DNA of 64,000 nt from Lytechinus pictus (lineage: Eukaryota): NCBI RefSeq assembly GCF_037042905.1, contig NC_087251.1, positions 39,866,001-39,930,000 on the forward strand. Direction: 5' to 3'. How positions within the stretch are numbered: position 1 is the stretch's first letter; each line of letters begins with the position of its first letter. The translations under genes and the position numbers were made by a program. This document shows, piece after piece, positions 25,261-64,000 of the stretch. A model generated the notes under the pieces. That model saw only the letters and a list, made by a program, of their open reading frames with translations. It was not told where the DNA came from and made no database searches.

Positions 25261-26543
25261 AAAATCTCTCGAGCTTTTTTCGTTTTCATGCTCTTTATAT
25301 TCCAGACATACCTGAGACCTTATCATCATCCATGCGTGCAAAACCTCTCCATAAAATATAAGTTTTTTTTTTATATAGTCTTAAGAATTGGTTTATCATA
25401 GTTACATAATCTTGTTTTTTAATTTATCATAAATTTGCAATTTACCGTAATGTGTCCGAACAGGGGCTGAAGTCCCCCCCCCCCCCTGCGTGAACCGCAG
25501 GTAGATTTTTGAAGCATTATTGTATCATTCTTGTGGTATTTATCATCCATTTTTATGTGTTTTTATTATTCCAGCGTTTTCACGGAATGAGGAATGAAAG
25601 TTATGGACATTGAGATGGAATTTCCAATATATTCATCGTCGACCTCACTACATCTACAATGTCACGCCTCCTCTAATGTTGAACTTGAGAATATAGCCAA
25701 CAAGACCTGATAACTGCAAGTTAGAAGACTGCAATGCCTGACATCCATTTGTACTATTTGGTTATGGCAACGAAGAAAGAAGAACATTTGGTAACATTCT
25801 TTGCGATACTTAAGGAAAAAACGTAAGCTGCAGAAACAGTTTTACAATATTATTCTTGTGGACATATTTCTTTATTTCCGTGTGCGGACTAGACACAATT
25901 TTCGCGGCAGAGCTTCGCCGAGACTAATCCGAACCTCACGGGAGGTTTGTTGATTGGTCTCTGGACGGTTGTTCTCCCCTTAATTTACCCATTTGAACTT
26001 GATAATATTGTGAACATCAGCGGACAGAGACTTATTTGTGGAGCTGCGGATAAATATTGAAAACACTGGATCTTAGAGGGAAAATTTGTTTGGAGCTGAA
26101 ATCATGTTTCTGTGGACATGGATACATGCCGATATCAGAGAGAGGACAGATGTCAGACTGAACATTTGTATGAGTGAGTCCATTTTACCCCTAGAACAAC
26201 ACAGCAATATCACTTACTGATCTTAATGAAACTTTGACATTTATGCATATGGGTTACGGTTGGTTTTAGTGCCAGGATTTGTAGAGTAAGTTAATTAGGC
26301 AAAATGATAGGGTCCCCCCATAGGAGCCTGACCGAAGCTTGATCTTAGCCCATCTCCATAAATGTTATTGTGTCATATCAAGAAGATTGCTTTGTTGTCA
26401 CCTACGGGTAATCGAATTCATTTAATTTTTTTTTTATGAATAAGTGCCGAAAGCTTTACAACTTTTTTTTTAGAAAAAGGTTGTAAGGCTTTCCCCCGAC
26501 AAATCTCGTTGAATTGTTAGCGAGAATTCGGCGTAATTCCATA

Positions 26544-26752
26544 CAGGGGCGGTGCCGGCAGTGAGGGGGTGGGGCGTTGCCCCCTTTGAATTTTGTTTAA
26601 AGTACTTAGAGAAAATTACAAAAGAGGAGAAGAATATAAAAACTAATTAAACAAAATTAAAATATCGTTTTAGTTCCTTGAACTCCATTAGAACACTATA
26701 GCTGGCGCGACCTTTCGGTTGTCTTGCCCCCTATACCCTGGCGCCGCCCCTG
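26544..26752. mobile_element. Short hAT-like MITE predating the duplications
   Basis: CAGGGGCGGTGCC / GGCGCCGCCCCTG ends. Also at 55634-55856, and at 44772 with the right end deleted. Confidence 0.7.
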
Positions 26753-29533
26753 GGTAAAAATGCGTTCCCATGCCAAGATTATGGCAGGTGAAATTATCGT
26801 AGAAAGCATTAACGATATTCGATATTCGGGCGTTAATAGATTTCGTATATAAAAGGCATTACGTTTGCCCTCTAGGAACAACCGTAACGAACGTTTAAAA
26901 GGTGAGATATATTACATTTATTTCGTACGTTTGATTATTATTTTTTTTTTTCGTTTGATTGATTTTGGGGCAGCTTGCTGCCCCTATTTACTTCTTAGTA
27001 CAGGAGGAACTAAGTGCTGAGTAAGTACTTTTTTGTAATATTGATGGCATGCCAATTTTATCCTTTTTTGAATTTCCATACAATTTCTACTTTACTTATA
27101 AGGATAATAGTGTGGTTCAGTGCACAGTCCCATAGCAGATCGAGTTGTAAACCCCATGGAGATTTTTTTTTCCATGGTAATCCTCAAAAAGTCAAGTGTG
27201 AGTGCGAATGGATGGATCATGAATAGGCCTATCGATATAGAAACAGATAAAGACCCTACATTTAAAGTCAAAAGAAGACCAAAGATTCTTCCTACACGTA
27301 GATATGCTCAGATTGTTTTTGTACAATTCTTAATTGGACAAATAATAGTTCTAACAACTGACAGCCCCATGCACGTAATAGTAATAGATCTAGACATCGT
27401 TACCATTATGGACATCATGTGTCGTGTTGACAAAACTGAATATGGGCTATCCATCCGTTTCATATTTTTGTTATTTTATAGGGGAAATCAATACTTTACT
27501 ATACCATGGTTGTTGCTCAAAGGATCGTGGGTTTTGAATTGGAAAGGGCCATTGTATGCGCTTATAAGGAACAAATTGTAACAATCGTATAAAAACATAG
27601 GCCTAACTTTCTTTATATTATTATATCTAGATGAAACATTAGCAAACAATTAACAACTTAAATTGTTTACCGCATGGAGATGATGATGATGATTATGATA
27701 GCGATGATAGCGCCGGTTATTGATCAATTCAATTAAATTCAAGAATTGCATTTATTGATGATTATGCAATATCGTACATGGATTAAGCTGCAGCTGTAGC
27801 TTTCTTCTTAAAAAGGTTGTTGGCACAATATATAAACATCATAATACATTATACATTTATATGAAAAACAATGTAAAATGTCATGAGGAAAATATAATTT
27901 TGATTTTTTTTTTGGTAGATCTAGTGCATAATCCTCACATTAAAATAATTATCAGAATCGAGATTTTGATTAACATGGATTGATTGTGTTTATGTTTCAG
28001 GTAAGGAATACCCCAAAAGTGTCTACCCGGCATTAGCAAGGTGGTATTTGGACAGCAAAGAAAATCGCGACTTTCGTCGTCTTGCCGACCTGAGTGACTT
28101 GAAACCTCGGTCATTATGGTTATACATGTATATACCCAAAGAACAATATACTTGTATCACGTCATGATCTTAATTAATGTTGTCGAGCTGGTTTGTGAGG
28201 CGAATTTTAATGTCACAGTTTGTAGAAAAGGTCACACATCTAGGACCTTAGTATAGGGGATTGACTAAATTTGCTCGGTAAATTTATAATATCATGTCAA
28301 GAAGATTACTGCATTATCGCCCGACGGTTACTTATTCTTAACGCGACTGGGATAGTACGACTATTCCTGAAACGAGTTGAGGTGGCGCTATAGTTAAAAT
28401 CGTATTTTGGCTTTACTTTGGACTAGGGAAAAACATAAACCGTTGACTTTGTTTTTACGTTTTCCTCCGTCCAGTCGTTCATTCATTGAGTCTCTCGTAC
28501 GATCATTCGTTTCTTGCTTTTAGTCATCATGCTCAATACGTAGCACCGATCGTCTCGTTCGTTTGGATTATCGCGGTAAGTTTAATTTCACTAGTAATCT
28601 TATTACAATGTCTTTGTATATAAATCAATCAATGATATCAGTCTATATTTTCAAATTCGTTTTTAACATTGCTGTTATTAAAATTTCGTAATTTTGATTT
28701 GACACTTTAATACAGATCCACATTTCTTCACATTTAGTAAAGTGGTGGAGACATAGTTTTTCATAATATTACCGTTAATTCTATTATTAAAGGGGCTTTA
28801 GACAAATTACGTACTTAGAAATAATGAAATCAAACTAGCAACGACATAGGTTTGATATTTTTTCTATCGATAGATCTAGATAATGAATAGAAATATTATT
28901 TTTTTAAACGGATGATTATTATCAAGTGACAACAAACCATGAGGTTTGTATATTGGGTGCATGGTTTATGTATAATCAAATGCCAAACAATCGTCAGAAA
29001 CAAACACTATTTTCAATTATTACTATTTTCTTGTTAATGTTCCAGGTGTGGAATGTGAATAGGGGCCTACATCTTCACGCGCTTTGAAAGAGAAGCTTCT
29101 GCAACCATATCGACTAGCAAATACCCTCTTGAAAATCTAACAAGCTCCGCGAGAGTAATTTTCCTGTGGAACAATTATACAGCAGTTTTTTCATCGATAT
29201 CCAACAAAGCTTATACAACCAAAGAGGTTTAATACAGCTGAACAATTTATCTCATCCTTAGAAAGGGATGAAAACTAATGTAATATACCAGATATTTGGT
29301 ATTCTGGTAGGGTATGGTTGATTGTGGGGTTGACTATTTTGGTTGATAACTCGTAATGAGTAATGACGATATATACACAAACTGTAAAAAAAATGTAACT
29401 AAGTGTGAGGATTTTAGTTGTAATGTCAGATTGTTTGAGAGCCAGGATATGTATAATGAGTATTTTATTCCACAGGTTTCCTTCTAGCAGCGATTTGTCA
29501 AAACTAATTTAATTTAGTAATCTTTTGAATCAG

Positions 29534-32500
29534 AGATTCGTCACCCTTCCACCAGAAAGCAAGTATTCTCCTTCCAATTACCACTAGCTCTATCACCCTT
29601 TCATCAGTGAGCAACTAGCCACCTTCCGTCTTCAACTAGCTTTGTCATCCTTTCGTCAGAGAGCAACTAGTCTCATTCCTTCTACTAATAGTTTCGTCAC
29701 CCTTTCATCAGAAACTAACAATTTCTCCTTCACTTTACCACTAGCTTTGTCAACCTTTTACCAGAGATCAACGAGTCGCATTCCATTTACCACTAGTTTC
29801 GATACCCTTTCATCTGAGAACAACTAGTCTCTCATCTACCACCAGCTTCATCACCCTGTCATCAGACAGTCTCATCCATCTACCACTGGCTTCGTCACCC
29901 TTTCAGTAGAGACCAACTAGTTTCCTTCCTTTTTCAACTAGTTTCGTCACCATTTAGAGCAAGTAGTCTCTTTCTATCTACAACTAGCTTTCTCATCCTT
30001 TCATCAGAGAGCAACTAGTCTCCTCCATCTACCACAAGCTCTATCACCCTTTCATCATAGAGCAACTAGTCTTCTCTTTCCATCTATCACTAGTTCCATC
30101 ACCCTTTCATCAAAGAGCAGCTAGTCTCCTTCCATCTACCACTAGTTTCATAACCCTTTCATCTGAGACAATTAGTCTCCCATGTACCACCAGCTTCATC
30201 ACCCTGTCATCAGAGAGTCTATTCCATCTACCACTAGCTTCGTCACCCTTAAATCAGAGAGCAACAAGTCTCCTTCCTTCTTCAACTAGCTTCGTCACCC
30301 TTTAGAGCAAGTAGTCTCTTTCTATCTACCACTAGTTTGTCATCCTTTCATCAGAGAGCAACTAGTCTTCTTCCATCTACCACTAGCTTTGTCACCCTTA
30401 AATCAGAGAGCAAGCAGTCTCCTTCCATCTACCACTAGCTTCGTCACCCTTTCATCTGAGAGCAACTAGTCTCTTTCATCTACCACCAGCTTCATCACCC
30501 TGTCATCAGACAGTCTCTTCCATCTACCACTAGCTTAGTCACCCTTAAATCAGAAAGCAACCAGTCTCCTTCCATCTACCACTAGCTCTCGTCACCCTTT
30601 CATCTCGGAGGAACTAGCATCCTTCTATCTACAACTGGCTTCGTCACCCTTGCACAGAGAGCAACTAATCTCCTACCACAAGCTTTGTCACCCTTTCATC
30701 AGAGCCTCCTTCCATCTACCACTAGCTTCGTCACCCTTCCATGAGAGAACAAATAGTCTCCTTCCATCTACCGCCAGCTCATCTCCCTCCATCTACCATA
30801 GTTTTGTCACCGTCTAATCAGAGAACATCTAGTCTCATTCCATTTACCACTAGCTTCGTCACCTTTTCATCATAGAACAACTAGCCTTCTTCCATTTACC
30901 AATAGCTTCTTAATCATTCCATCAGATACCAACTAGCTTCCTTCCATCTACCACTGGCTGCGTCACCATTTATAGCAAGTAGTCTCTTTCATCTACCACT
31001 AGCTTTCTCATCCTTTCATCAGAGAGCAACTAGTTTCTTTCCCATCTACCACCAGCTTTTTCACTCTTACACCAGCGACCAACTAGTTTCCTTCAACCAG
31101 CTTCGTAACCCTTTAGAGCAAGTAGTCTCTTTCCATCAACCACTAGCTTCGTCACCCTTTCACCAGTGAGTAACTATTCTCCTTCTGTCTACCACTAGCT
31201 TCGTCATCCTTTCATCAGAGAGCAACTAGTCTCCTCCATCTACCACAAGCTCTATCACCCTTTCATCAGAGAGCAACTAGTCTCCTCCATTTATCACTAG
31301 TTCCATCACCCTTTCATCAGAGAGCAAATAGTCTCCTTCCATCTACCACTAGTTTCGTCACCCTTTCATCTGAGAACAACTAGTCTCTCATCTACCACCA
31401 GATTCATCACTCTGTCATCAGCGAGTCTCTTCCATCTACCACTAGCTTCGTCACCCTTAAGTCAGAGAGCAACTAGTCTCATTCCTTATTCAACTAGCTT
31501 CGTCATCCTTTACAACAAGGAGTCTCATTCTATCTACCACCAGCTTCGTCACCCTTTCATCAGTGAGCAACTAGTCTCCTTCCATCTATACTAGGTTCGT
31601 CACCCTTAAATCAGAGAGAAACTAGTCTCATTCCTTATTCAACTAGCTTCGTCACCCTTTACAACAAGGAGTCTCATTCTATCTACCACCAGCTTCGTCA
31701 CCCTTTCATCAGTGAGCAACTAGTCTCCTTCCATCTATACTAGGTTCGTCACCCTTAAATCAGAGAGAAACTAGTATCCTTCCATCTACGACTAGCTCTC
31801 GTCACCATTTCATCTGGGAGGAACTAGCATCCATCTGGCTACCACTGGTTTCGTCACCCTTGCACAGAGAGCACCTTATCTCCTACCACAAGCTTTGTCA
31901 CCCTTTCATCAGAACCTCCTTCCATCTACCACTAGCTTCGTCACCCTTCCATGAGAGAAAAAATAGTCTCCTTCCATCTACCGCCAGCTCATTTCCCTCC
32001 ATCTACCACTAGTTTTGTCACGGTCTAGTCAGAGAACATCTAGTCTCCTTCCATCTAACACTAGCTTCGTCACCCTTTTACCAGAGATCAACTAGTCTCA
32101 CTCCATTTACCACTAGTTTCGAAACCCTTTCATCTGGGAACAACTAGTCTCTCATCTACCACCAGCTTCATCACCCTGTCATCAGACAGCCTCTTCCATC
32201 TAACACCTGCTTCGCCACCCTTTCAGTAGAGACCAACTAGTTTCCTTCCTTCTTCAACTAGTTTCGTCACCATTTATAGCAAGTAGTCTCTTTCATCTAC
32301 CACTAGCTTTCTCATCCTTTCATCAGAGAGCAACTAGTTTCTTTCCCATCTACCACTAGCTTTTTCACCCTTACACAAGCGACCAACTAGTTTCCTTCAA
32401 CCAGCTTCGTAACCCTTTAGAGCAAGTAGTCTTTTTCTATCTACTACTAGCTTCTTCATCCTTTCATCAGAGAGCAACTAGTCTCCTCCATCTACCGCAA

Positions 32501-33700
32501 GCTCTATCACCCTTTCATCAGAGAGCAACTAGTCTCTTTCCATCTACCACTAGTTCCATCACCCTTTCATCAGAAAGCAAATGGTTTCCTTCCGTCTGCA
32601 ACTAGCTCCGTCACCCTTTAGAGCAAGTAGTCTCTTTCTATCTACCACTAGCTTCTTCATCCTTTCATCAGAGAGCAACTAGTCTCCTCCATCTACCACA
32701 AGCTCTATCACCCTTTCATCAGAGAGCAACTAGTCTCTTTCCATCTACCACTAGTTCCATCACCCTTTCATCAGAGAGCAAATGGTTTCCTTCCTTCTGC
32801 AACTAGCTTCGTCACCCTTTAGAGCAAGTAGTCTCGTACTATCTACTACTACCTTCGTTACCCTTTCATCAGAGAGCAACTAGTCTCCTTCCATCTACCA
32901 CTAGCTTCGTCACCTTTTCATCAGAGAGTCTATTCCATCTACCACTAGCTTCGTCACCTTTTTATCAGAGAGCAACTAGTCCCCTTCCATCTATCACTAG
33001 TTTCATCATCATTTCATCAGAGAGGAACTGGTCTCTATCCACCACTAGCTGCGTCACCCTTTCATCTCGGATGAACTAGCATCCTTCTATTTACCACTGG
33101 CTTCGTCACCCTTCCACAGATAGCAACTAATCTCCTACCACACGCTTTGTGACCCTTTCATCAGAGCCTCATTCCATCTACCACTAGCTTCGTCACCCTT
33201 CCATGAGAGAACAAATAGTCTCCTTCCATCTACCGCCAGCTCATCTCCCTCCATCTACCACTAGTTTTGTCACCGTTTAATCAGAGAACATTTCTCTCCT
33301 CCATCTACCACAAGCTCTATTATCCTTTCATCAGAGAGCAACTAGTCCCCTTCCATCTATCACTAGTTTCATCACCTTTTCATCAGAGAGCAACTTGTCT
33401 CCATCTACCACTAGCTTCGTCACCTTTTCATCTGGGAGAAACTAGCATCCTTCCTTCTTCAACTAGTTTTGTCACCATTTATAGCAAGTAGTCTCTTTCA
33501 TCTACCACCAGCTTCTTCACCCTTTCACATTCCATGTGACAACAAATAGTCTCCTTCCATCTTCCGCCAGCCCATCTCCCTCCATCTACCACTAGTTTTG
33601 TCACCGTTTAATTAGAGAATCTCTAGTCTCCTTCCATCTAACACTAGCTTCGTCATCATTTAATCAGAGAGTAACTCGTCTCCTTCCTTCCTACAGTTTC
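29534..33700 (+). repeat. ~52-bp minisatellite array, copy 1 (~80 units)
   Basis: Consensus CCATCTACCACTAGCTTCGTCACCCTTTCATCAGAGAGCAACTAGTCTCCTT, with higher-order duplications. Confidence 0.95.
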
Positions 33701-34530
33701 CATCCTAGCTTTTACCATGATCCTATTCAACATTTCACCGTTAATAAGTTCTGCTGTTTCTATCGACCATTTCACCCTTCGTCTAAATAAAGGTAAGAAA
33801 TAATAGATATTTTAAATGTAATTTCACCTCCTTTTCACATTTAATCTAAAGCCATTAAGCTGTTTCCATATCAATTTATTACGCAACTATTAAAATCAAA
33901 GAGTATCCAATAAGTATGACAAAATCAATATTACAGTTAAGGTTACAATTAAACTGAGACTCAAAACTTTATGAGAAACTCCAATCATTATCATTGATAT
34001 AATATTATTAACTGTTTCTCCCATGATTTCAAAAAAGCCCGCCGCCCACCCCCCCCCCCCCCAATTTTTTTTTACCTTCTGCCAGGCCAAGCTGGAATAA
34101 AAAAGCATAAAATATTGATAAAATCTGAAGGAAACAACAGGGTTGAAGTTAATGTTTGAAATGTTAATTTTCTCTTTACTTTAATTTCAGCTTAGTTTTA
34201 GCGATATTTCATTTTTATTCAGGAGATATCTTTTGACAAAGTAATCACTGTTTTGATGGCAACAAAGACCTATAGAGAACACTGTTATCCAGATGTCACG
34301 ATGATTTCAACAGCAGAATCAGTAACTCAGTGGTATGTTTTTTATTTCCTTTTTAGGCTGGATAAGAGTAAAGACAATGCTAATAATAATAATTCTTATT
34401 TACTCAGGTTAGCCGCTTCGCATCAGCGTTTATTGGCAGTGTTTTACGAAAGTAGTACATTTTTTTAGATAGAGAATGTATCATGATACCAATGCTAACA
34501 ACTCTAAATGACGTTACCCAAACAGGCATA

Positions 34531-37500
34531 AGCAAGGTTTCCACTTTGGCGAGTTGGAGTTGCGAGTCATACGCGAGCTGCGCGAGCTCTAACTCGCCTT
34601 AGCTCGCACAAGCTCGCGTGAAATTTACATTTTTCCCTGGAATTTGCTTGAGTGACAAACGACTCAACATCGAGTTCACTACGCTCGTTGTACGAGTGAA
34701 CCGAGCGCGAAACGAGTCAGGCCGAGCTTAGTATGAGTTGCGGTGACCTTTATACGACTTAAAGCGAGCTATGAACGAGTTATAAAGATTTTGTTACGAG
34801 TGATAAGAGTTTCATACGACCTAGGGGTGGGAAATGCACATTTTTGGCACTCAAAGATGGATGCCGGCGGAGGGGGCGTCAACACCAAATCTTAACCGAA
34901 GGTTAAGTTTTTGAAATGGCATCATAACTGAGAAAGTATTTGGACCTAGTTCATGAAACTTGACCATAAGGTTTATCAAGCATTACAAAATATTCTTTTC
35001 GAGTTTCAGGTCACAAGACCAAGGTCAGAGGTCATTTATGGTCAATGAACGTAGACCATGTTTAGGGAATCAACATCAAAGTCTTAACCTACGGTTAAGT
35101 TTTTGAAATGTCATCATAACTTAGAAAATATATGAACCTAGTTCATGAAACGTGGACATAAGGTTATTAAAGTATATAAACATCCTGCTTGAGTTTCAAG
35201 TCACATGACTAAGGTCAATTAGGGTCAATGGACTTTGGCCAATTGGGGTATTTGTTAAATTAACATTATAACTTTGAAAGTTTATGAATCTGATTCATGA
35301 AACTTGAACATAAGAGTAATCAGGTATCACTAAACATCCTGTGCGGATATCAGGTCACATGTCCAAGGTCAAAGGTCAATGAACTTTAGTGATGTTCGGG
35401 TGATCTGTTGAATTACCATCATAACTTTAAAAGTTTATAGATCTGATTCATGAATCTTAGATATAAGAGTAATCAAGTATTCCTGAACATCCTGTGCGAG
35501 TTTCAGGTCACATGACGAAGGTCAAAGGTCATTTATGGTCAATAAACTTTGGCCATGTTGGGGGTATTTGTTGAATTACCATCATAACTTTGAAAGCTTA
35601 TGGATATGATTCATCAACTTGGATATTAGAGTAGTCAAGTATCACCGAACATTTCATGACAGTTTCAGGTCACATGACCAAAGTCAAAGGTCATTTAAGG
35701 TTATTGAACTTTGGCCATTTTGGAGATTAATACTATATTACTGTCATAACTTTCAAAGTTTAGATACAGTTTATAAAATGTGGATATAGGGGTAATCTAG
35801 TATCACTGACAAGTCTTAGGTCAAATGATAAAGGTCAAATGTCATTTATTGTAAATGAACGTAGTATTGTATCAATGTATGAATGGTGTTTTTGTGAATA
35901 ATTATTTTACAATAGTTTTCAGAGTCAGCACTACTTCTATATTGGATAGCGTGATGCAGAGGCGCTCCACTTGGACCTTAATTGTCCAGTTTGATGTCTT
36001 GTTTTTTTACCTTGGCTCTGCTCGTCATTGACCTCCTCTTCCGTTTCAATTGTCTCTTCCTGCACTTCTTCTACCCTTGTTTGAATGTCATCTTCTTTCG
36101 CTGTTTCCCTATCTGAATGGCCACAACTCTTGGATCTTTTGGATCGAGGCATATTTCTCTCCTTATTTGTTGAAAGTTGTAATAATGCAGTGGAAACAGC
36201 CTTTTTAAAAGTACGTGTACATTGCGTGGGTCAGTTAAAATGTGCTCTCACTTTAAAATAACTCCTCAAAAAAAGTTTGGAAATCCGACTTTAATCAAAA
36301 CTCCCTCCTCAGTTTTAGTAAATATCAATTGTTATTAATATCAATGAATAGATCATTTAAGTGTCTTTAAATGATACCCTACATGATATGATTATGGTTC
36401 ACATGGAGGTGCAGTGCCTTGAAATGTAGGGCAAGGTCAAAAATCAAAATTAAGTTGCAAAGAGACACAGTATTGAAAGTCACTGTTCCTTTGATGAGTG
36501 AGTATTTTAAGCGGTTTCTTTTGAGTTTGATCGGTAATCCCGCCTCGGTTTTAGTAAATATCAAGTTGAATTAATATCAATGAATAGATCATTTAAGTGT
36601 CTTTAAATGATACCCTACATGATATGATTATGGCTCACATGGAGGTGCAGTGCCTTGAAATGCGGGGCAAGGTCAAAATTCAAAATTTGCAAAATGACAC
36701 AATATTGAAAGTCACTGTTCTTTTCTTCCATGATGATGAGTGAGATTCTCAGCAATTGTTTTCATGCACCTTAATATCAACATTCAAATGGAATCAAACA
36801 CACCTCTGCACAAGCAAACACACAACAAACAAACATAAACCACAACAAAACATTATGAAATGAAAAAGCAGGGGTTTGATTTGAATGGATTTTCATCTTT
36901 ATTGACACAGACAAAAACATCATGTTCTGTATTGACCCTTCATGATTACTTATGCTCGTTTTGCAGCTTTTTACTTGAGACCTCATCCAACACTTATTAA
37001 TTTTGTTCTTTTTTTGATGGCATGATCATAACAAGCATGGGATCATTTAAAAGAGAATCAAATGATCTTTTGAAAGATATCAAATATGCATTGTGTAAAA
37101 TTCGGAGTCGGGATAAATTAATGGCCAAACTCAGATTTCCAAACTTTTTTGCTCGTTTTGCAGCTTTTCAATTCAGACTTTATCCAACACTTTTGAATCC
37201 TGCTCTTTTCGTGATGGCATGATCATAACAAGCATGGTATCATTGTAAAGGAAATTGAATGACCTTTTAAATGAATGATGTCAAATGTGCAATGTGTAAA
37301 TTTTGGAGTTGGGAGAAATTAATGGCCAAACTCAGATTTCAAACTTTTTTTGAGGGGTTTATATGTGGGGAAAATATAGATCACTGGACATTTATCATTC
37401 AGCTGGCATGCCTCTGAGCTATTGCAACGCACTCGGATACGAAACTCGCTGTAACTCGGGGTGCTCGATCTAAAGTCGCGCTAATCTCGTGGGCACCTCC

Positions 37501-37910
37501 ATTTGACTCGTAAAACGATCGCAATGCTCGTATATCGCTCTTGAAAACTCGGAACGCACTCGCGTATACTCAGATGTGGCGAGTTATTACGAGTTATTGT
37601 GAGTTTATCTCGAGCTTCTTACGAGTTATTGCGAGTGCTGCGAGTATATAACGAGTTTAGGTGAGTTCAGCACGAGTTACAGCGAGTTAGCAAAATTTTT
37701 GAACATGTTCAAAAATTTTGAAACAGCTCACGACTTCAAGGAGAGTTGTCCCGAGCTTGAACGAGCTCCGCCGAGCTCTGCCGAGTTGTCGCGAGTTATC
37801 CCGAGTTTCATGGTGAGCTTTATGCGAGTTATCGCGAGTGCCTCATTTTGGCAACTCGCTATAACTCGCCATAACTCGCGATGTTAACTCGCCAAAGTGG
37901 AAACCTTGCT
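34531..37910 (+). mobile_element. PIF/Harbinger-like non-autonomous element A
   Basis: TIRs AGCAAGGTTTCCACTTTGGCGAGTT / AACTCGCCAAAGTGGAAACCTTGCT, dense subterminal CGAGTT/AACTCG motifs, followed by TAA. Empty site in copy 2 at ~51960-51980. Superfamily inferred from the 3-bp TWA target. Confidence 0.75.
34865..35972 (+). mobile_element. 5'-truncated DINE-1/Helentron-like element carried inside element A (mirror copy ~39425-40535)
   Basis: Collinear with 23035-23928, from GGCGTCAACACCAAATCTTAACC to CAGAGGCRYTCCACTTG. Confidence 0.85.
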
Positions 37911-37913
37911 TAA

Positions 37914-42094: not shown

Positions 42095-42391
42095 TATTAT
42101 TATTAATTGTGGCTACTTAATTAGCGCACAGGTCCACCTTTCGGTGCTCATGGCGCTTTAAAAAGGGCCCTGCCATTATTATTACCCCGGCTAAGATAGG
42201 CAACCGATTCAGGCGCACACAGCTTTTTTTTAGGAATTACTTCCTGCCGGTACCCATTTACATCACCTGGGTCGAGTGCAGCACACAGTGGATGAATTTC
42301 TTGCTGAAGGAAATTACGCCATGGCTGGGATTTAATCCCACGTCCTTCTGTTTCAAAGTCCGGAGACTAATCCACTGGGCCACAACGCTCC
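42095..42391 (-). mobile_element. tRNA-derived SINE (copy 1 only)
   Basis: The minus strand begins GGAGCGTTGTGGCCCAGTGG (A box), followed by GGGATTAAATCCC (degenerate B box), a CCCAGGTG..TAAATGGGTACC core and a (TAA)n tail. Absent from copy 2 at ~53225. Confidence 0.85.
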
Positions 42392-54100: not shown

Positions 54101-56000
54101 TTTCACATTCCACAGGTGAATGTATGGGGGGAGGGGGTGATGCCCCTCAAAAGTTCAACGATTAAGAAAGACAAGGAAAATAAAGGGAGAAAATGACAGA
54201 AAAAGGGAAAATGGTGACATCAATTCATGAATATTGTATCTTGATATATATCACAAAACTGTATTTTGATTTTAAAAATTCAAGATTTTGCTGACTGTCA
54301 ACTTTTGGGGAATTTTGCTCCGTAGGTCATACACTTTCCCTCCTTTTTGGTCAACTAAAGGCCAGCTGCTAGTCGACCAGGATCCATATTGATAAATCCG
54401 TAATAAGTCGAGTAGTCACTAATCAACTAAGTGTGCAGTTTCCTAATTGTGCCATAAATATTGCATTTTGGTAATTGCACATTTTGTTAATCAACCCAAA
54501 ATGTTCAACTTAACGGCATGTACCCGATTACTGGCTGAAGCCCCCCCCCCCCCCCCCTCCGTTGGTTTGTGACGCCTTTTTTGTACCGGTATTCATAATG
54601 ATTTTGCATTGGTTTTAATGATACTTTTTCTTTTTAATTCCACAGTTTTCACAGAATTGAAAATCCGGAAGCTATCTTGAATTTTTTTTCCTCGAAACAT
54701 GGACAAGGAGATTGAGTGAAAAGTATTATACACGTTTCCACAATAAAGACTCAATTCCTGGAGAAGATTGTGTCCTTATTTACTTATCATTGACTTCACT
54801 TCATCCAACACGCCTCCTCAAATGTTGAACCTGAGAAATAAATCCTGATGACTTCAAGTGCCAAGTCCTGGAAAAATGCCTATTACTCTATAGACACGAT
54901 ACTTTCAGAAGAACTCGAGATGCAGAATCAGTCAACAAATTTTTTCGTGGACGGATCCCTATATTTTCTGTGTGCGGACTAGACACCATTTTAAAGATAG
55001 AACTTCGCCGAGACTAATCCGAACCTCACGGGAGGCTTGTTGATGGGTCTCTGGACGGTTATTCTCCCCTTGATTTACCAATTTGAACTTGATAATATTG
55101 TGAACATCGGAGGACAGAGACTTATTTATGGAGCTGCGGAGAAATATTTAAAACACTGGATCTTTGAGGGAAATTTTGTTTGGAGCTGAAATCATGTTCC
55201 TGTGGACATGGATGCACGACGATATCAAAGAGGGGACAGATGTCAGACTGAACATTTGTATTAGTGAGTAATTTTACCCCTAGAACAACACGGCAATATC
55301 ACTTAATGATCTTCATGAAACTTTGACATTTATGGATATGGGTTACGGTTTGGTTTTAGTGCCAGGATTTGTAGAGTAAGTTAATTAGGCAAAATGATAG
55401 GGTCCCCCATAGGAGCCTGACCGAAGCTTGATCTTAGCCCATCTCCATAAATGTTATTGTGTCATATCAAGAAGATTGCTGTGTTGTCACCTACGGGTAA
55501 TCGAATTCATTTAATATTTTTTAATGAATATGTGCCGAAAGCTTTACAACTTTTTTTAAAGAAAAAGGTTGTAAGGCTTTTCCTCCCGACAGATCTCGTT
55601 GAATTGTTAGCAAGGATTCGGCGTAATTCCTTACAGGGGCGGTGCCGGCAGTGAGGGGGTGGAGACGTTGCCTCTAAATTTTGTTTAAAGTACTTAAAGA
55701 AAATTACAAAAGAGAAGAAAACAAAAACGAATTAAACAAAATCAAAATATCGTATTAGTTCCTCGAACTCCATTAGAACACTATTATTCAAATGAAAAAA
55801 ACAAACTTACGTCACCTCTCGGTCGTCTTGCCCCCTATACCCTGGCGCCGCCCCTGGGTAAAAATACTTTCACATGCCAAGATTATGGTAGGTGAAATTA
55901 TCGTAGAAAGCATTAACGACATTCGATATTCGGGCGTTAATCGATTTCGTATACGAAAGGCATTACGTTTGCCCTCGTAGGAACATCCGTTACGAACGTT

Positions 56001-56072
56001 TAATAATAATAATAATAATAGTGGTTATTTGTATAGCGCACAGGTCCACATTAAGGTGCTCATGGCGCTTAG
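56001..56072 (-). mobile_element. Short SINE/LINE 3'-end fragment (copy 3 only)
   Basis: AGCGCACAGGTCCAC..GGTGCTCATGGCGCTT matches 42123-42157; adjacent (TAA)n. Confidence 0.7.
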
Positions 56073-58753
56073 GAAAAAAAAAAGGAAAGAGAAAAAGAAA
56101 GAATAATAAAATAAAATATGAGATATATTATATTTATTTTTTGTTTGATTGATTTGGGTTAGCTTGCTGCCTAATTTACTTCTTAGAGCAGGAGGAACTA
56201 GGTGCTGAGTAAGTACTTTTGTGTAATATTGATGGCATGCCAATTATATCCTTTTCTGAATTTCCATACAATTTCTACTATACTTATAAGGATAATAGTG
56301 TAGTTCAGTACACAGTCCCATAGCAGATTGAGTTGTAAACCCCATGGAGAATTATTTCCCATGGTAATCCTCAAAAAGTCAAGTGTGAGTGCGAATGGAT
56401 GGATCATGAATAGGCCTATCGATATAGAAACTGATAAAGAACCAACATTTAAAGTCAAAAGAAGACCAAGGATTAAAATGGTTTAATATTCCACTTCTTC
56501 CTACATGTAGATATGCTCAGATTATCTTTGTACAATTTTCGTAATTCTTTTTGGACAGTTAATAGTTCTAACAATTGCCAGTCCCATGCAATAGCTAAAG
56601 TAATAGATCTAGACATCGTTACCATTATGGACATCATGTGTCGTGTTGACAAAACTGAATATGGGCTATCCATCCGTTTCATATTTTTGTTATTTTATAC
56701 GGGAAATTAATACTGTACTATACCATAGTTGCTGGTCAAAGGATCGTTGGTGTTGAATGGGGAAGGATCATTATATGCGCTTATAAGGAACAAATTGTAA
56801 CAATCGTATAAAACATAGGCCTAACTTTCTTTATGTTATTATATCTAGATGAAACATTCGTAAATAATTAGCAACCTGAAATGTTTACCGCATGGAGATG
56901 ATGATTAGCAGGGCCCGCTGGTAGAACAGTTTTCGAAACTGAAGTGGCTACCCTGGGTAAATATACCTATATTATTATTATTATTATTATTATGATATCG
57001 ATAATAACGCCGGTTATTGTTCAATTCAGTTCAATTCAAGAATGGCATTTATCGATGATTATGCAAAATTGTACATGAATTAAGCTGCAGCTGTAGCTTT
57101 CTCGTTTAAAAGGTTGTTGACACACTATGTAAATATCATAATGAATACAATTTCAAAGTTATATTAAAAATAATGTAAAATGTAATGAGGAAAAGACAGT
57201 TTTGTTTTATTTTGTAGATCTAGTGCATAATCATCACATTCAGAAATAATTATGAGAATCGAGATTTTGATTAACATGGATTTATTGTGTTTATGTTTCA
57301 GGTAAGGAATACCACAAAAAATATCTACCGAGCATTAGCAAGGTGGTATTTGGACGGAAAAAACAACATTCGCGGCTTTCGTCGTCTTGCCAACCTGAGT
57401 GACTTGAAACCTCAGTCATCATGGTCATATATACCAGGGGAACAATATACTTGTATTAGTTTATGATCATAATGAATCTATGAATGTTGTCGAGCTGGTT
57501 TGTGAGGCGAATTTTAATGCCATGGTTTGTAATAAAAGTCACACATCTAGGGCCTTAGTATGGGGCTTGACTAAATTTTGTCGGTAAATTTATAGTATCA
57601 TGTCAAGAAGATTGCTGCATTATCGCCCGAAGGTTACTTAATCTTAACGCAACTGGGATAGTACGACTCTTCCTGAAACGAGTTGAGGTGGCGCTTTATT
57701 CTAAATCGTCTTCTGGCTTTACTTTGGACTGGGAAAAAAAATAAACCGTGATATGTTTTTACGTTTTCGTCAGTCCACTCGTTAATCCGTTGAGTCTCTC
57801 GAATGATCATTCGTTTCTTGCTTTTAGTCATCATGCTCAATACGTAGCACCGATCGTCTCGTTCGTTTGAATTATCGCGGTAAGTTTAATTTCACTAGTA
57901 CTGTATTCCGTTAGTAACATTGCTGTTATTAAATTCTCGTAATTTTGATTTGACACTTTAATACAGATACACATTTCTTTACATTTAGTAAAGTGGTGGA
58001 GACATAGTTTTTCATAATATTACCGTTGATTTTATCATTAAAAGGGCTTTAGACAAATTAGGTACTCAGAAAGAATAAAATCAACTATCAAAATCAAACT
58101 GGCAACGACAACAGTTTAATATTTTCTATTTCGATAGATCTAGATGATAAATAGAAATATAAAAAGGGATGATAATTATCCAGTGACAACAAACCTTATG
58201 GTTTGTATATTTGGTGCGAGTTTATGTATAATTAAATGCCAAACAGTCGTCAGAAACAAACTATTTTCTATTATTATTATTTTCTTGTTTATGTTCCAGG
58301 TGTGGAATGTGAATAGGGACCTACATCTTCACGCGCTTTGGAAGAGAAGCTTCTGCAACCATATCGACGAGGAAATACCCTCTTGAAAATCTAACAAGCT
58401 CCGCGAGATTAATTTTCCTGTGTAACAATTACAGCAGTTTTTTTCATCGATATCCAGCAAAGCTCATACAACCAAAGAGGTTTATTACAGCTGAACAATT
58501 TATCGCATCCTTAGAAAGAACCAGTTATTTGGTATTCTGGTTGATTGTGGAGTTGACTATTTTGGTTGATATCTCGTAATGAGTAATGACGATATATACA
58601 CAAACTGTAAATAAAATGTAACTAAGTGTAATGATTTAAGTTGTAATGTCAGATTGTTTGACAGCAAGGATATGTATAATTAGTATTTTATTCCACACGT
58701 TTCCTGTCAGCGATTTGTCAAAACTAGTTTAATTTAGTAATGTTTTTAATCAG

Positions 58754-61700
58754 AGCTTCGTCACCCTTCCATCAGAAAGCAAGTATTCTCCTTCCAATTA
58801 CCACTAGCTTCGTCACCCTTTCATCAGTGAGCAACTAGCCGCCTTCCATATTCAACTAGCTTCGTCACCCTTTCGTCAGAGAGCAACTAGTCTCCTTCCT
58901 TCTACAAATGGTTTCGTCATCCTTTCATCACAAACTAACTATTCTCTTTTCATTTACCACTAGCTTTTTTAACCTTTCATCAGAGCCTCCTACCATTTAC
59001 CACTAGCTTCTTCATCCTCCCTTTAGAGAGCAACTAGCTTCCTTCCATCTATCACTGGATTCGTCACCCTTCAATCAGAGAGCATCTAGTCTCTATCTAC
59101 CGACTAGTCTCCTTCTTCAACTAGTTTCGTCACCATTTATAGCAAGTACTCTCTTTCATCTACCACTCGTTTCGTCACCCTTTCACCAGTGAGCAACTAT
59201 TATCCTTCTGTCTCACACTAGCTTCGTCATCCTGTCATCAGAGAGCAACTAGTCTCCTCCATCTACCACAAGTTATATCACCCTTTCATCAGATAGCAAC
59301 TAGTCTCCTCCTTCCTTCTATCAGTAGTTCCATCACCATTTCATCAGAGAGCAAATAGTCCCCTTCTTTCTTCAACCAGCTTCGTCACCCTTTTGAGCAA
59401 GTAGTCTCGTTCTATCTACCACTACCTTCGTTACCCTTTCATCAGAGAGCAAGTATTCTCCTCCTTCCATCTATCACTAGTTCCATCACCATTTCATCAG
59501 AGAGCAACTAGTCTCTTTCATCTACCACTAGTTTCGACACCCTTTCATCTGAGAATAACTAGCTTCTCATCTACCACCAGCTTCATCACCCTGTCATCAG
59601 ACAGTCTCTTCCATCTACCACTGGCTTCGTCACCCTTTCAGTGGAGACCAACTAGTTTCCTTTCTTCTTCAACTAGTTTCGTCACCATTTATAGCAAGTA
59701 GTCTCGTTCATCTACCACTAGCTTTCTCATCCTTTCATGAGAGAACAACTAGTCTCTTTCCCATCTACCACTAGCTTCATCACCCTGTCATCAGACAGTC
59801 TCTTCCATCTACCACTAGCTTCGTCACCCTTAAATCAGAAAGCAACCAGTCTCCTTCCATCTACCACTAGCTCTCGTTACCCTTTCATCTGGGAGGAACT
59901 AGCATCCTTCTATCTACAACTGGCTTCGTCACCCTTGCACAGAGAGCAACTAATCTCCTACTACAAGCTTTGTCACCCTTTCATCAGAGCCTCCTTCCAT
60001 CTACCACTAACTTCGACACCCTTCCACGAGAGAACAAATAGTCTCCTTCCATCTACCGCCAGCTAATCAATCAGGGTACTAATGGATAATTCGTTTTTCA
60101 TTCCCGATCATCGCAGAGCAAAAACGGAAATCAACCTCATGGTTCGGTCTTTGAAAACACAAAAACGAAATCACAACGAGAAAAACCTGTTGTTCAAAAA
60201 CAGAAGAATGAAATCAGAAATACTTTTGGGCTCTTTCTGATTTCTCATTCTATGCTTGTGTTTGTTATATATCAAAAACAAAATCAGAACACGCTTTCCG
60301 CTCCGTGATGCTGTTTGGAAAAACGCAGACAGCGAAAACGAAATAGGAAACTCGCATTCCACTTTCTGCTCTGTGAAGGTCCGAAAAGAAAATTAAACGC
60401 TGAGCCGAGTTGCCCTTTCTTTACGTTTTAACATTCTTAACATGTTTCCATTAATCTTTTTTTTTTCTTTTTTAATCAATGTTTAGAATTTACTTCATTA
60501 TGTATGTATATGTTACTCCTTGTATCTCTTGTATTTATATTGTTATGTATTTTCATGACGGAAATAAAACAAACAAACAAACATGCATATTAAAGAGCGC
60601 CCTCTACGTTTTCGATCATTATACACACGTGCACGCAGTACAGTGCATGCATGTTACGACCACGTGCAACAAAAAAATTTCCAGCGTTTTCTTTTAGGAC
60701 CTTCACAGAGCAGGAAGTGGAAAGCGAGTTTCCGATTTCGTTTTCCATGTTTGCGTTTTTCCAAACAGAATCACGGAGCGGAAAGCGTGTTCTGATTTTG
60801 TTTTTGATATATAACAAACACAAGTATGGAATGAGAAATCAGAAAGAGCCCAAAAGTATTTCTGATTTCATCTGAGAACAACTAGTCTCTCATCTACCAC
60901 CAGCTTCATCACCCTGTCATCAGACAGCCTCTTCCATCTAACACCTGCTTCGTCACCCTTTCAGTAGAGACCAACTAGTTTCCTTCCTTCTTCAACTAGT
61001 TTCGTCACCATTTATAGCAAGTAGTCTCTTTCATCTACCACTAGCTTTCTCATCCTTTCATCAGAGAGCAACTAGTTTCTTTCCCATCTACCACTAGCTT
61101 CTTCACCCTTACACAAGCGACCAACTAGTTTCCTTCAACCAGCTTCGTAACGCTTTAGAGGAAGTAGTCTCTTTCTATCTACCACTAGCTTCTTCATCCT
61201 TTCATTAGAGAGCAACTAGTCTCCTCCATCTACCACAAGCTCTATCACCCTTTCATCAGAGAGCAACTAGTCTCTTTCCATCTACCAATAGTTCCATCAC
61301 CCTTTTATCAGAGAGCAAATGGTTTCCTTCCTTCTGCAACTAGCTTCGTCACCCTTTAGAGCAAGTAGTCTCTTTCTATCTACCACTAGCTTTTTCATCC
61401 TTTCATCAGAGAGCAACTAGTCTCCTCCATCTACGACAAGCTCTATCACCCTTTCATCAGAGAGCAACTAGTTTCTTTCCATCTACCACTAGTTCCATCA
61501 CCCTTTCATCAGAGAGCAAATGGTTTCCTTCCTTCTGCAACTAGCTTCGTCACCCTTTAGAGCAAGTAGTCTCGTACTATCTACTACTACCTTCGTTACC
61601 CTTTCATCAGAGAGCAACTAGTCTCCTTCCATCTACCACTAGCTTCGTCACCTTTTCATCAGATAGTCTCTTCCATCGACTACTAGCTTCGTCACCTTTT

Positions 61701-63210
61701 TATCAGAGAGCAACTAGTCCCCTTCCATCTATCACTAGTTTCATCATCATTTCATCAGAGAGGAACTGGTCTCCATCTACCACTAGCTGCGTCACCCTTT
61801 CATCTCGGAGGAACTAGCATCCTTCTATTTACCACTGGCTTCGTCACCCTTCCACAGAGAGCAACTAATCTCCTACCACACGATTTGTGACCCTTTCATC
61901 AGAGCCTCATTCCATCTACCACTAGCTTCGTCACCCTTCCATGAGAGAACAAATAGTCTCCTTCCATCTACCGCCAGCTCATCTCCCTCCATCTACCACT
62001 AGTTTTGTCACCGTTTAATCAGAGAACATTTGTCCCCTCCATCTACCACAAGCTCTATCATACTTGCATCAGAAAGCAGCTAGTCCCCTTCCATCTATCA
62101 CTAGTTTCATTACCTTTTCATCAGAGAGCAACTTGTCTCCATCTACCACTAGCTTCGTCACCTTTTCATCTGGGAGAAACTAGCATTCTTCCTTCTTCAA
62201 CTAGTTTCGTCACCATTTATAGCAAGTAGTCTCTTTCATCTACCACCAGCTTCTTCACCCTTTCACATTCCATGTGACAACAAATAGCCTCCTCCCATCT
62301 TCCGCCAGCTCATCTCCCTCCATCTACCACTAGTTTTGTCACCGTTTAATTAAAGAATCTCTAGTCTCCTTCCATCTAACACTAGCTTCGTCACCATTTA
62401 ATCAGAGAGTAACTCGTCTCCTTCCTTCCTACCTCTATCTTCGTCACCCTTTCATCTCGGAGGAACTAGCATCCTTCTATTTACCACTGGCTTCGTCACC
62501 CTTCCACAGAGAGCAACTAATCTCCTACCACACGATTTGTGACCCTTTCATCAGAGCCTCATTCCATCTACCACTAGCTTCGTCACCCTTCCATGAGAGA
62601 ACAAATAGTCTCCTTCCATCTACCGCCAGCTCATCTCCCTCCATCTACCACTAGTTTTGTCACCGTTTAATCAGAGAACATTTGTCTCCTCCATCTACCA
62701 CAAGCTCTATCATACTTTCATCAGAAAGCAGCTAGTCCCCTTCCATCTATCACTAGTTTCATTACCTTTTCATCAGAGAGCAACTTGTCTCCATCTACCA
62801 CTAGCTTCGTCACCTTTTCATCTGGGAGAAACTAGCATCCTTCCTTCTTCAACTAGTTTCGTCACCATTTATAGCAAGTAGTCTCTTTCATCTACCACCA
62901 GCTTCTTCACCCTTTCACATTCCATGTGACAACAAATAGCCTCCTTCCATCTTCCGCCAGCTCATCTCCCTCCATCTACCACTAGTTTTGTCACCGTTTA
63001 ATTAGAGAATCTCTAGTCTCCTTCCATCTAACACTAGCTTCGTCACCATTTAATCAGAGAGTAACTCGTCTCCTTCCTTCCTATCTCTATCTTCGTCACC
63101 CTTTCATTACAGAGCATCTAGACTCCATCTAACAGAGAGCAGCCAGTTTCCATCCATTGACCAATATTTTTGTGCATAACACCTTTTCGTAAGAGAGCAG
63201 CTAGTCTAGC
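58754..63210 (+). repeat. ~52-bp minisatellite array, copy 3 (~70 units, interrupted by a MITE)
   Basis: Same consensus. A recent 652-bp duplication is visible (ORFs 62005 and 62657 are near-identical). Confidence 0.95.
60072..60871. mobile_element. MITE with long inverted arms and deleted right end, inserted in array 3
   Basis: 60208-60392 is inverted to ~60687-60871. The left ~135 bp has no mirror. Absent from arrays 1 and 2. Confidence 0.8.
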
Positions 63211-64000
63211 TTTTACCATGATCCTATTCAACATTTCACCGTTAATAAGTTCTGATGTTTCTATCGATCATTTCACCCTTCGTCTAAATAAAGGTAAGAA
63301 ATAATAGATATTTTAAATGTAATTTCACCTCCTTTTCACATTTAATCGAAAGCCATTAAGCTCTTTCCATATCATTATATTACGCAACTATTAAAATCAA
63401 AGAGTATCCAATAAGTATGACAAAATCAATATTACAGTTAAGGTTACAATTAAACTGAGACTCAAAACTTTATGAGAAACTCCAATCATTATCATTGATA
63501 TAATATTATTAACTGTTTATCCCATGATTTCAAAAAAGCCCGCCGCCCACCCCCTCCCAATTTTTTTTTACCTTCTGCCAGGCCAAGCTGGAATAAAAAA
63601 AGCATAAAATATTATTGATAAAATCTGAAGGAAACAACAGGGTTGAAGTTAATGTTTGAAATGTTAATTTTCTCTTTACTTTAATTTCAGCTTATTTTTA
63701 GCGATATTTAATTTTAATTCAGGAGATATCTTTTGACAAAGTAATCACTGTTTTGATGGCAACAAAGACCTATAGAGAACATTGTTATCCAGATGTCACG
63801 ATGATTTTAACAGCAGAATCAGTAACTCAGTGGTATGTTTTTTATTTCCTTTTTAGGCTGGATAAGATTAAAGACAATGCTAATAATAATAATTTTTATT
63901 TACTCAGGTTAGCCGCTTCGCATCATCGTTTATTGGCAGTGTTTTACGAAAGTAGTACATTTTTTTAGATAGAGAATATATCATGATACCAATGCTAACA

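Follow-up and report, generated by a model that had tools for sequence, protein, structure and literature searches.

A tandem cluster of probable lineage-specific, ORF-less RNA genes built around a conserved hairpin domain in Lytechinus pictus

Introduction

The question raised by this locus is what a series of long tandem units, bearing splice-like motifs and no long open reading frame, might be. The locus lies in Lytechinus pictus (NCBI RefSeq assembly GCF_037042905.1, contig NC_087251.1, positions 39,866,001 to 39,930,000 of the forward strand), and the whole of this stretch of 64,000 nucleotides is called the window here. An earlier reading made from the letters of the DNA (the sequence-only reading) had proposed a multi-copy spliced non-coding gene; the multi-copy nature and the lack of an ORF stand, while for splicing the support consists of conserved motifs. 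Its description of the family as non-coding multi-copy units likewise holds, but overlooked the feature that defines the family, a conserved hairpin domain. We consider that the window is probably part of a tandem cluster belonging to a lineage-specific family of ORF-less RNA genes read from the plus strand.

Organization of the tandem cluster

Self-BLAST and probe mapping place three collinear plus-strand units, A, B and C, in the window (Table 1). Between units A and B lies a palindromic insertion of 6.3 kb (34529-40852), with arms of 99% identity, which breaks the putative last exon of unit A at 34529. Unit B has private insertions at ~42100-42400, 43250-43650 and 46250-47000, and in unit C a conserved exon donor has been lost to a young dispersed repeat of ~105 nt (56004-56121). 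As two of the three units in the window carry lesions (the last-exon insertion in A and the donor loss in C), some copies may be dead. The array extends past the window with units D, E and F and a diverged unit G, making at least six units in total.

Table 1. Features of the tandem cluster, in window coordinates.
Feature	Unit A	Unit B	Unit C	Strand	Remarks
Unit	~25560-34528	40849-51972	51973-64000	+	A, first of the array, its similarity to the other two units fading upstream of ~25560; B, the sole unit in the window with all conserved signals intact; C, cut by the window end, genome end ~64035
5' hairpin of the conserved block	25913-25964	44151-44202	55003-55054	+	
250-nt rod-like hairpin (model R1)	26175-26424	44404-44651	55265-55513	+	
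3' palindromic hairpin	26442-26492	44668-44718	55530-55581	+	U-run/A-run apex
Candidate primary structured exon	~25575-26901	43794-45109	54646-~56003	+	Donor lost in C
Candidate hairpin cassette exon	28001-28575	47085-47549	57302-57879	+	Ends TTTYAG/GT and G/GTAAGT
Acceptor-to-donor stretch	Acceptor 29046, donor 33793	48027-51233	Acceptor 58300, donor 63294	+	
52-bp minisatellite	29534-33700	48514-51070	58750-63131	+	Repeats: A ~80, B ~49, C ~84; polypyrimidine+YAG sites: A 136, B 80, C 114
Candidate last exon of gene B		51679-53040		+	Acceptor 51679 conserved in all arrays
Degenerate remnant of the conserved block (5' part)				+	18659-19017, upstream of the array

The conserved hairpin domain

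A core of ~0.6 kb (B 44118-44745; 44149-44750 as compared across arrays) is 90-94% identical to its counterparts in distant arrays, against a background of 55-70%. On the plus strand it folds into three hairpins, one of which is a 250-nt rod with a long imperfect stem (MFE -83 kcal/mol, z -6.8); the consensus fold has 102 pairs. Model R1 of the rod recovers 29 primary domains at 203-288 bits and 24 secondary modules at 80-156 bits, all on the plus strand of their units. Of the cells, 91.4% are paired, compared with 34-43% when the partners are slid; double changes are seen at 15 pairs in 128 cells (7-33 cells in the slid controls), and the observed score was reached by none of 500 shuffles. 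The covariation counts overstate the number of independent events, because the fitting of alignment A5 followed the structure of the model and many of the copies arose by recent duplication. Ascertainment explains part of the surplus of G.U over A.C pairs, since a structure derived from the minus strand shows the same surplus. Folding of the plus strand beats that of the minus strand in 27 of 28 primary copies and in all 24 secondary copies, and the consensus forms 50 pairs (-29.3) on the plus strand and 24 pairs (-8.7) on the minus strand. The primary hairpin bears the motifs GTGAGT, GTAAGT and GGTAAT at its base and apex. Judged by this comparison of copies, the core is a structured RNA domain under selection, in which compensatory changes keep a common fold on one strand.

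Splice signals and candidate exons

The splice-like motifs of the sequence-only reading are present where it had placed them. They differ in quality: several are kept in five arrays and others are weak or lost. The donors GTGAGT (A 26174, B 44403), GTAAGT (B 44515), CG/GTAAGT (B 47550) and AAG/GTAAGA (A 33793, B 51234) are kept in all five paralogous arrays, as is the acceptor at A 34223 (B 51679). The acceptor at A 27004 (B 45209) is absent from the C1 and C15 arrays, that at A 29534 is simply the first YAG of the 52-bp repeat, and the donor at B 42000 is weak and missing from one array. Two of the three junctions that had been put forward as examples (26173^27004, 33792^34223 and 42000^42813) rely on non-conserved acceptors.

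Strong donors common to all five arrays number three on the plus strand and none on the minus strand, and conserved acceptors outside the repeat number five and two, respectively. The family-wide plus-strand signals are, in unit B, acceptors 43794, 48027 and 51679 and donors 45110 and 51234; dispersed members also keep the acceptors at 43794 and 48027, and donor 45110 is invariant in every member, with conservation falling directly past it. The AATAAA at 53020 in unit C (homologous to B-unit 41874) is kept in four of the five arrays, although it does not discriminate between the strands, since there is one conserved site on each. No promoter or first exon was found. The plus-strand reading is supported by the strand-specific covarying structure together with the family-wide splice motifs, and it is from such features that we infer transcription of the units, its strand, the junctions and the ends.

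The candidate primary structured exon has an ACAG/TTTT acceptor and an AAG/GTGAGA donor in all of the tandem and dispersed members examined. The cassette candidates begin with TTTYAG/GT in 27 of 34 cases and end with G/GTAAGT in 25 of 29, and the putative exons delimited by these motifs are 465-617 nt long; the unit B cassette contains a degenerate second hairpin (47205-47428).

Outside the core block, candidate exons are conserved no better than candidate introns and evolve like background. This restriction of exceptional conservation to the hairpin block favours an alternative in which the hairpin is itself the functional product, either a stable medium-sized RNA or one that is diced (an hpRNA, endo-siRNA or unusual pri-miRNA), with the array and everything else in the unit forming a poorly constrained host transcript like the hosts of snoRNAs and miRNAs. 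The stability of the long imperfect stem would suit such a product, but the arms, internal loops and apex of the rod are all conserved, unlike a 22-nt stretch, and the block lacks both C/D and H/ACA boxes and matches no snoRNA or miRNA of Rfam above noise. The GTGAGT directly 5' of the rod also favours this alternative, as it would make the rod intronic under the junction 26173^27004; on the other hand, the family-wide acceptor 43794 and donor 45110 bracket the rod as an exon, and the cassette copies also carry exon-type boundaries. GAS5/UHG-type host genes resemble the units in being ORF-less, in bearing splice signals and in containing a short structured element that is far better conserved, and they differ in that the element here is without sno/miRNA features or an Rfam match and is bracketed like an exon. 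We regard a hairpin product as unlikely, and retain the reading of the rod as part of an exon of a longer ORF-less RNA.

The 52-bp minisatellite

Each unit includes a 52-bp C-rich minisatellite (33% C, 11% G) of ~49-84 repeats, flanked by an acceptor and a donor that are both conserved. In unit C, TRF reports no 52-bp array between ~60065 and ~60865. The 'giant repeat exon' of the sequence-only reading needs to be redrawn: it would begin not at the first repeat but at B 48027 (A 29046). Every 52-bp repeat holds two polypyrimidine+YAG acceptor-like sites, so the repeat stretch could equally be mostly intron, and 48027-51233 would be either one giant exon or a short exon, an intron and a short exon. 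Retention of the minisatellite in the mature RNA is conceivable, and we lean somewhat against it. The 52-mer consensus is identical in all arrays. Selection on the 52-mer was considered and set aside, as an identical consensus is also explained by independent decay of the copies, and the per-position conservation profile is uninformative, being biased by repeat extraction.

The family across the genome

Four further tandem arrays are found (C7:34.75 Mb, C7:30.05 Mb, C1:34.2 Mb and C15:15.6 Mb), giving at least 26 tandem units over five arrays. In addition, there are at least 14 dispersed family loci, spread over eight chromosomes, with the block order of the arrays and the 52-mer array included. 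A census of the core by genome DNA search returned 92 candidate places and 40 scored copies, most of the ~92 candidates lying within arrays or being internal modules. One dispersed subfamily has flanks that are collinear over at least 10 kb, at six loci only. An apparent shared left edge in one dispersed locus proved to be a private minisatellite insertion. A literature search found no description of the family as such.

Tandem arrays at five places and relatives scattered over several chromosomes are also what might be expected of a selfish or neutral repeat, that is, a macrosatellite enlarged through unequal crossing-over or else a mobile element of large size that is non-autonomous. In either case the hairpin would act at the DNA level as a palindrome, or as a signal required for the element to spread, without host function. 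The differing array lengths among units, the recent internal duplications (94-99% identity) and the tolerance of the units for insertions that break conserved signals agree with this. However, the copy number is low, with 10-kb collinear flanks common to six loci only, and the units showed no transposase or reverse-transcriptase ORF, no terminal repeats and no poly(A) tail. Splice motifs are conserved on one strand only, and selection on RNA is indicated both by compensatory changes and by folding that is strand-asymmetric in 51 of 52 copies. A high-copy transposon was rejected on account of the low-copy flanks and the lack of transposase or reverse-transcriptase ORFs in the units. The D4Z4 and DXZ4 macrosatellites are partly transcribed, and D4Z4 encodes DUX4; the present units share with them kilobase-scale head-to-tail arrangement at several loci, but are 10-12 kb long and ORF-less, with an exon-like internal structure and a minisatellite of their own. 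Taken together, a selfish or neutral repeat seems to us a rather improbable account of the family.

Coding capacity and known RNA families

The claim of the sequence-only reading that the units lack an ORF is borne out: none of 160 aa or more is present anywhere in them, and tblastn of all unit B open stretches against distant units revealed no ORF conserved across the arrays. The frame-breaking indels between copies that it had reported were recovered too, as 1-nt and 2-nt indels. Searches of 20 stretches against Pfam, with the exons searched individually, gave nothing above threshold, the sole match being DUF7656 at 15.8 bits (cut-off 27), and a search of 5.8 billion sequences with the longest array ORF found no protein relatives. 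In the 52-mer consensus both TAGs fall in a single frame, and none of the three frames of the G-rich strand is open. The alternative that had been offered, a decayed protein gene, thus finds no support in the tblastn, Pfam and protein searches. Such a gene, decayed or highly unusual (for example, one for a Ser/Pro/Thr-rich repeat protein from the C-rich strand, on which the 52-mer consensus is open in two frames out of three and some arrays hold ORFs of 110-230 aa), is most improbable, given that the period of 52 nt is not divisible by three and brings even a perfect array into the TAG-bearing frame once per three repeats, that the ORF lengths match chance for the base composition (by our own estimate), and that no frame is open across the arrays, matches being equal in several frames and on both strands.

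Among known RNA families, the Rfam 15 covariance models gave no match at the gathering score in the 64-kb window, the best match under lax settings being SNORD99 at 22 bits (cut-off 60), and ARAGORN found no tRNA. A C/D-box snoRNA, U3, 7SK, SRP RNA, telomerase RNA and a hammerhead or retrozyme were dropped on reading the sequence alone, and internal T4-T5 runs speak against a Pol III gene.

Gene model and possible role

Under the preferred reading of the cluster as a family of ORF-less RNA genes, each 10-12-kb unit would comprise one gene and ~2 kb of spacer. Unit B would begin with an upstream exon or promoter, followed by the 1.3-kb exon with the three hairpins, in which the rod would be under RNA-level purifying selection, and by the duplicated cassette exon. 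A further exon starting at 48027 would run into the 52-nt CU-rich array, donor 51234 would join acceptor 51679, and the last exon would carry its AATAAA ~1 kb into the next unit, with a predicted poly(A) site some 20 nt past this signal (41874 / 53020). The predicted junctions are thus 45109^47085, 47549^48027 and 51233^51679, and alternative ones could start from 44402 or 44514.

Our best guess is that the RNA serves as a scaffold for a nuclear ribonucleoprotein. Factors of the double-strand or U1 type would be bound by the hairpin exons, and the G-poor array, whether a giant exon or an intron that is spliced out slowly, would offer its 80-136 polypyrimidine+YAG sites per unit to PTB, U2AF or hnRNP-type proteins. 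Predicted partners of the rod and of the 52-nt repeats are U1-70K, U2AF, PTB, hnRNP K and Staufen/ADAR. The A-F repeats of Xist, the RRD of Firre and the units of NORAD are RNA modules thought to be multivalent protein-binding sites, and repeats rich in C or in pyrimidines are targets of hnRNP K or PTB-type proteins. Like Xist, Firre and NORAD, the present family is ORF-less, with a predicted multi-exon structure and tandem or duplicated RNA modules; the sequences are unrelated, the gene itself is multi-copy here (at least 26 tandem units and the dispersed loci), and the module is a 250-nt covarying hairpin duplicated as whole candidate exons. A scaffold role like that of Xist or Firre is pure conjecture. 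In mammals, U1 recognition motifs and pyrimidine-rich tracts are reported to keep RNAs on chromatin (bioRxiv 10.1101/310433; pCharme, PMC7773549). With these U1-motif- and PTBP1-dependent lncRNAs the units share 5' splice-site-like motifs and pyrimidine-rich tracts, a resemblance of motifs only, and the polypyrimidine+YAG sites are far denser here.

If the family is expressed, it would supply one RNA fold in dozens of natural sequence variants, a clear test bed for exon duplication in the building of modular RNAs and an extreme natural array of elements resembling 3' splice sites; if it is not, the strand-specific conservation of structure needs a different explanation. To our knowledge, lncRNAs with covariation-supported secondary structure are rare, and our literature search found no echinoderm multi-copy lncRNA families formed from a duplicated structured exon in tandem arrays. 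A more specific and rather speculative possibility, to which we give little weight, is that the RNAs of this family act on the splicing machinery as a multivalent decoy or as a condensate scaffold. The rod, with U1-type 5' splice-site motifs at its base and apex, and the pseudo-3' splice sites of the array would then allow RNAs from at least 26 tandem units to titrate U1, U2AF or PTB-type factors or to bring them together, or alternatively to nucleate a nuclear body at the arrays that encode them; such RNAs would represent a new class of animal architectural RNA.

Organization of the array and its family

Self-comparison and probe mapping identified three collinear plus-strand units (A, B and C) in the window (C7:39866001-39930000; assembly size 812 Mb), in agreement with the sequence-only reading of this DNA. 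Probe mapping showed that the array extends downstream of the window (L010-L013) through units D, E and F to unit G, which is diverged. Unit G (L013, C7:39960001-39970000) is only 67-70% like the other units, its hairpin domain was not found by R1 (the covariance model described below), and it is probably a decayed copy at the array end. Between units A and B lies a palindrome of 6.3 kb, the 99% identical arms of which (34529-37447 and 40852-37957) flank a ~500-bp centre; it is an insertion outside the unit proper, placed ~300 nt inside the candidate last exon of unit A. A 153-163-bp tandem repeat in its arms is also present at 23030-23850. All of the conserved signals are intact in unit B; unit A has one shifted acceptor (CAG/CG), and in unit C the donor equivalent to B 45110 is lost to a ~105-nt element with an A-rich tail (56004-56121). 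Copies of this element with 97-100% identity are spread over many chromosomes, with no fewer than 175 candidate places, and it is thus a recently active short dispersed repeat.

Four further tandem arrays lie on C7, C1 and C15, and single or small loci are found on C1, C3, C4, C5, C10, C12, C14 and C15; in the latter the block order is unchanged, with the 52-bp array ~4.5 kb downstream of the conserved core. The core has 92 candidate places in the genome, 40 of which were scored. The members of one dispersed subfamily align collinearly across 10 kb or more, and their flanks were found at six loci only. The family is low-copy and gene-like rather than a high-copy transposon. An apparent shared edge among the dispersed loci turned out to be a private insertion.

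Coordinates of units, arrays, hairpins and splice features (splice sites without a letter are in unit B; slash, splice point)
Feature	Position	Strand	Basis or remark
Unit A	~25560-34528	+	Self-comparison, probe mapping
Unit B	40849-51972	+	Self-comparison, probe mapping
Unit C	51973-64035	+	Self-comparison, probe mapping; truncated by window end
Tandem array	C7 at 34.75 Mb		5 units, 82-90% identical
Tandem array	C7 at 30.05 Mb		4 units
Tandem array	C1 at 34.2 Mb		8 units, ~72%
Tandem array	C15 at 15.6 Mb		3 units
5' hairpin	B 44151-44202	+	RNAalifold
Rod, ~250 nt	B 44404-44651	+	RNAalifold
3' palindromic hairpin	B 44668-44718	+	RNAalifold; U-run/A-run apex
Strong conserved donor	44515	+	GA/GTAAGT, in rod apex
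Strong conserved donor	45110	+	AAAAG/GTGAGA
Strong conserved donor	51234	+	AAAG/GTAAG
Acceptor	43794	+	ACAG/TTTT, ~350 nt upstream of core
Acceptor	48027	+	TTTCAG/GT.TGGAATG
Inferred cassette exons	A 28001-28575; B 47085-47549; C 57302-57879	+	Boundary motifs

A conserved core with a folded RNA domain

Aligning ten units showed that B 44149-44750 shares 90-94% identity with the C1, C15 and C7a arrays, where the background is 55-70%; this core is also the sole part that is readily recognisable in every dispersed member. RNAalifold on 18 members predicts three hairpins in it. Searching 334 kb with R1, which models the rod, returned 29 primary copies at 203-288 bits and 24 secondary copies at 80-156 bits, all on the plus strand of their units, with reverse-strand echoes of at most 76 bits. 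In the 53-copy alignment, which was fitted to R1 and includes many recent duplicates, 91.4% of cells are paired compared with 34-43% when the partners are slid, 15 rod pairs have changed on both sides, the cells with such changes number 128 compared with 7-33 when slid, and none of 500 shuffles reached the observed score. At several pairs, three or four different base combinations occur (for example GC/UG/CG/UA). Rfam contained no matching family.

The plus strand folds better than the minus strand in 27 of 28 primary copies (mean -79 versus -62 kcal/mol) and in all 24 secondary copies (-76 versus -53 kcal/mol); the consensus structure comprises 50 pairs on the plus strand (-29.3) and 24 pairs on the minus strand (-8.7). 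The raw G.U:A.C ratio, 140:8, is partly ascertainment, as a structure derived on the minus strand gives the same excess, and the strand call is therefore based on the energies and pair counts.

Most family members (for example L018, L022, L015 and L016) also have a 13-nt G+C-rich inverted repeat, CAGGGGCGGTGCC ... GGCACCGCCCCTG, with the first arm at 44770-44790 and the second ~150-200 nt downstream; unit B has lost the second arm. The arms enclose a ~200-nt stretch downstream of the 3' hairpin and upstream of the conserved donor, and might form a fourth helix in the structured exon.

Splice signals and candidate exons

GT and AG sites were scored for retention in representatives from all five arrays, with strong donors matching on average at least seven of nine consensus positions and acceptors having a pyrimidine tract and lying outside the 52-bp array. 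Three strong donors are kept on the plus strand and none on the minus strand; the corresponding acceptors number five (41640, 43794, 45522, 48027 and 51679) and two. Acceptors 43794 and 48027 and donor 45110 are retained in dispersed members too, and conservation ends abruptly just past the donor. Family-wide retention of 43794 and 45110 places the core within a 1.3-kb candidate exon, 43794-45109.

The secondary hairpins are located in duplicated cassettes, the surrounding sequence of which is only ~70% identical. TTTYAG/GT lies ~90-165 nt upstream of the hairpin in 27 of 34 cassettes and G/GTAAGT ~190-230 nt downstream in 25 of 29, giving putative exons of 465-617 nt. From these motifs we infer that the units are spliced on the plus strand, the best argument being the survival of both boundary motifs through exon duplication. 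One dispersed subfamily has three or four cassettes in succession at ~1-kb spacing. In L015, L016 and L022, which belong to one dispersed subfamily, an unrelated second tandem repeat of ~105 bp (for example L022:6162-7400) separates the primary exon from the first hairpin cassette.

Among the sites proposed from sequence only, donors A 26174/B 44403, B 44515, B 47550 and A 33793/B 51234 and acceptor A 34223/B 51679 are kept in all arrays. Others did not hold. The C1 and C15 arrays have GG at acceptor A 27004/B 45209, two representatives have lost acceptor B 42813, and donor B 42000, itself weak, is missing from one array; acceptor A 29534 is no more than the YAG of the first repeat unit.

An AATAAA at 41874/53020, conserved in four of the five arrays, weakly suggests a gene end ~1 kb inside the next unit, leaving a ~2-kb spacer; the reading is weak because the minus strand likewise has one conserved AATAAA. 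The private insertions of unit B fall within this spacer. The promoter and first exon were not located in the units, and the donor-like 42952 is a candidate end of a first exon.

The 52-bp array

Each unit contains 2.5-4.4 kb of a 52-bp repeat (33% C and 11% G on the plus strand), each 52-mer having two pyrimidine tracts with YAG ends. Such sites number 136, 80 and 114 in units A, B and C, respectively, a density of ~30 per kb compared with ~5 per kb in the rest of the unit, and GTRAG is nearly absent. Over ~800 bp at 60065-60865, inside the unit C minisatellite, TRF found no 52-bp array. The 52-mer consensus is identical in all five arrays, which could reflect constraint or an ancestral unit whose copies have decayed independently.

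The array sits between conserved acceptor 48027 and conserved donor 51234, with only two conserved GTs between them, both weak (48288 and 48293). This scarcity of donors favours one giant exon holding the array (B 48027-51233, 3.2 kb; A 29046-33792; C 58300-63293). A giant repeat exon had been proposed previously; on the present reading its start would move from the first repeat unit to B 48027. Exon-definition logic instead favours a short exon, 48027-48292, an intron with most of the array and a short exon starting from one of the last YAGs. Both readings remain, and we consider the presence of the array in the mature RNA to be possible, if somewhat doubtful.

Coding potential

The units contain no ORF of 160 aa or more, consistent with their earlier description as non-coding. 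Both TAGs of the 52-mer consensus fall in one frame, which a perfect array enters once per three units because 52 is not divisible by three; on the opposite strand none of the three frames is open. Some arrays contain ORFs of 110-230 aa, the chance expectation for the G-poor composition, and a search of 5.8 billion proteins, over the searchable length range, found no relative of the longest array ORF. Protein searches were run exon by exon, and for 20 open stretches from candidate exons no Pfam family was above threshold. Where open stretches of unit B match distant units, the matches fall in several frames and on both strands and are usually interrupted by stops, which indicates nucleotide rather than protein conservation.

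Proposed mechanism

Most likely, the family encodes a spliced nuclear RNA, the structured exons and pyrimidine-rich array of which would serve as multivalent protein-binding sites. In the primary rod, GTGAGT immediately precedes the base, the apex contains GTAAGT, and GGTAAT lies at the 3' base; these motifs are absent from the secondary modules and may be alternative donors or putative U1-type binding sites. U1-type sites are described as keeping mammalian lncRNAs on chromatin (10.1101/310433), and an account of pCharme describes chromatin retention through pyrimidine tracts bound by PTBP1 (PMC7773549).

Other features of the window

A degenerate fragment at 18659-19017, ~7 kb upstream of unit A, has 72% identity to the 5' part of the conserved block and is a relic of another unit. 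A run of N occupies 11955-12170, and none of the DNA was marked as resembling human sequence. On the minus strand, two long open frames at 1542-4256 (412 and 492 aa) resemble the reverse-transcriptase and endonuclease regions of a LINE-type retrotransposon.
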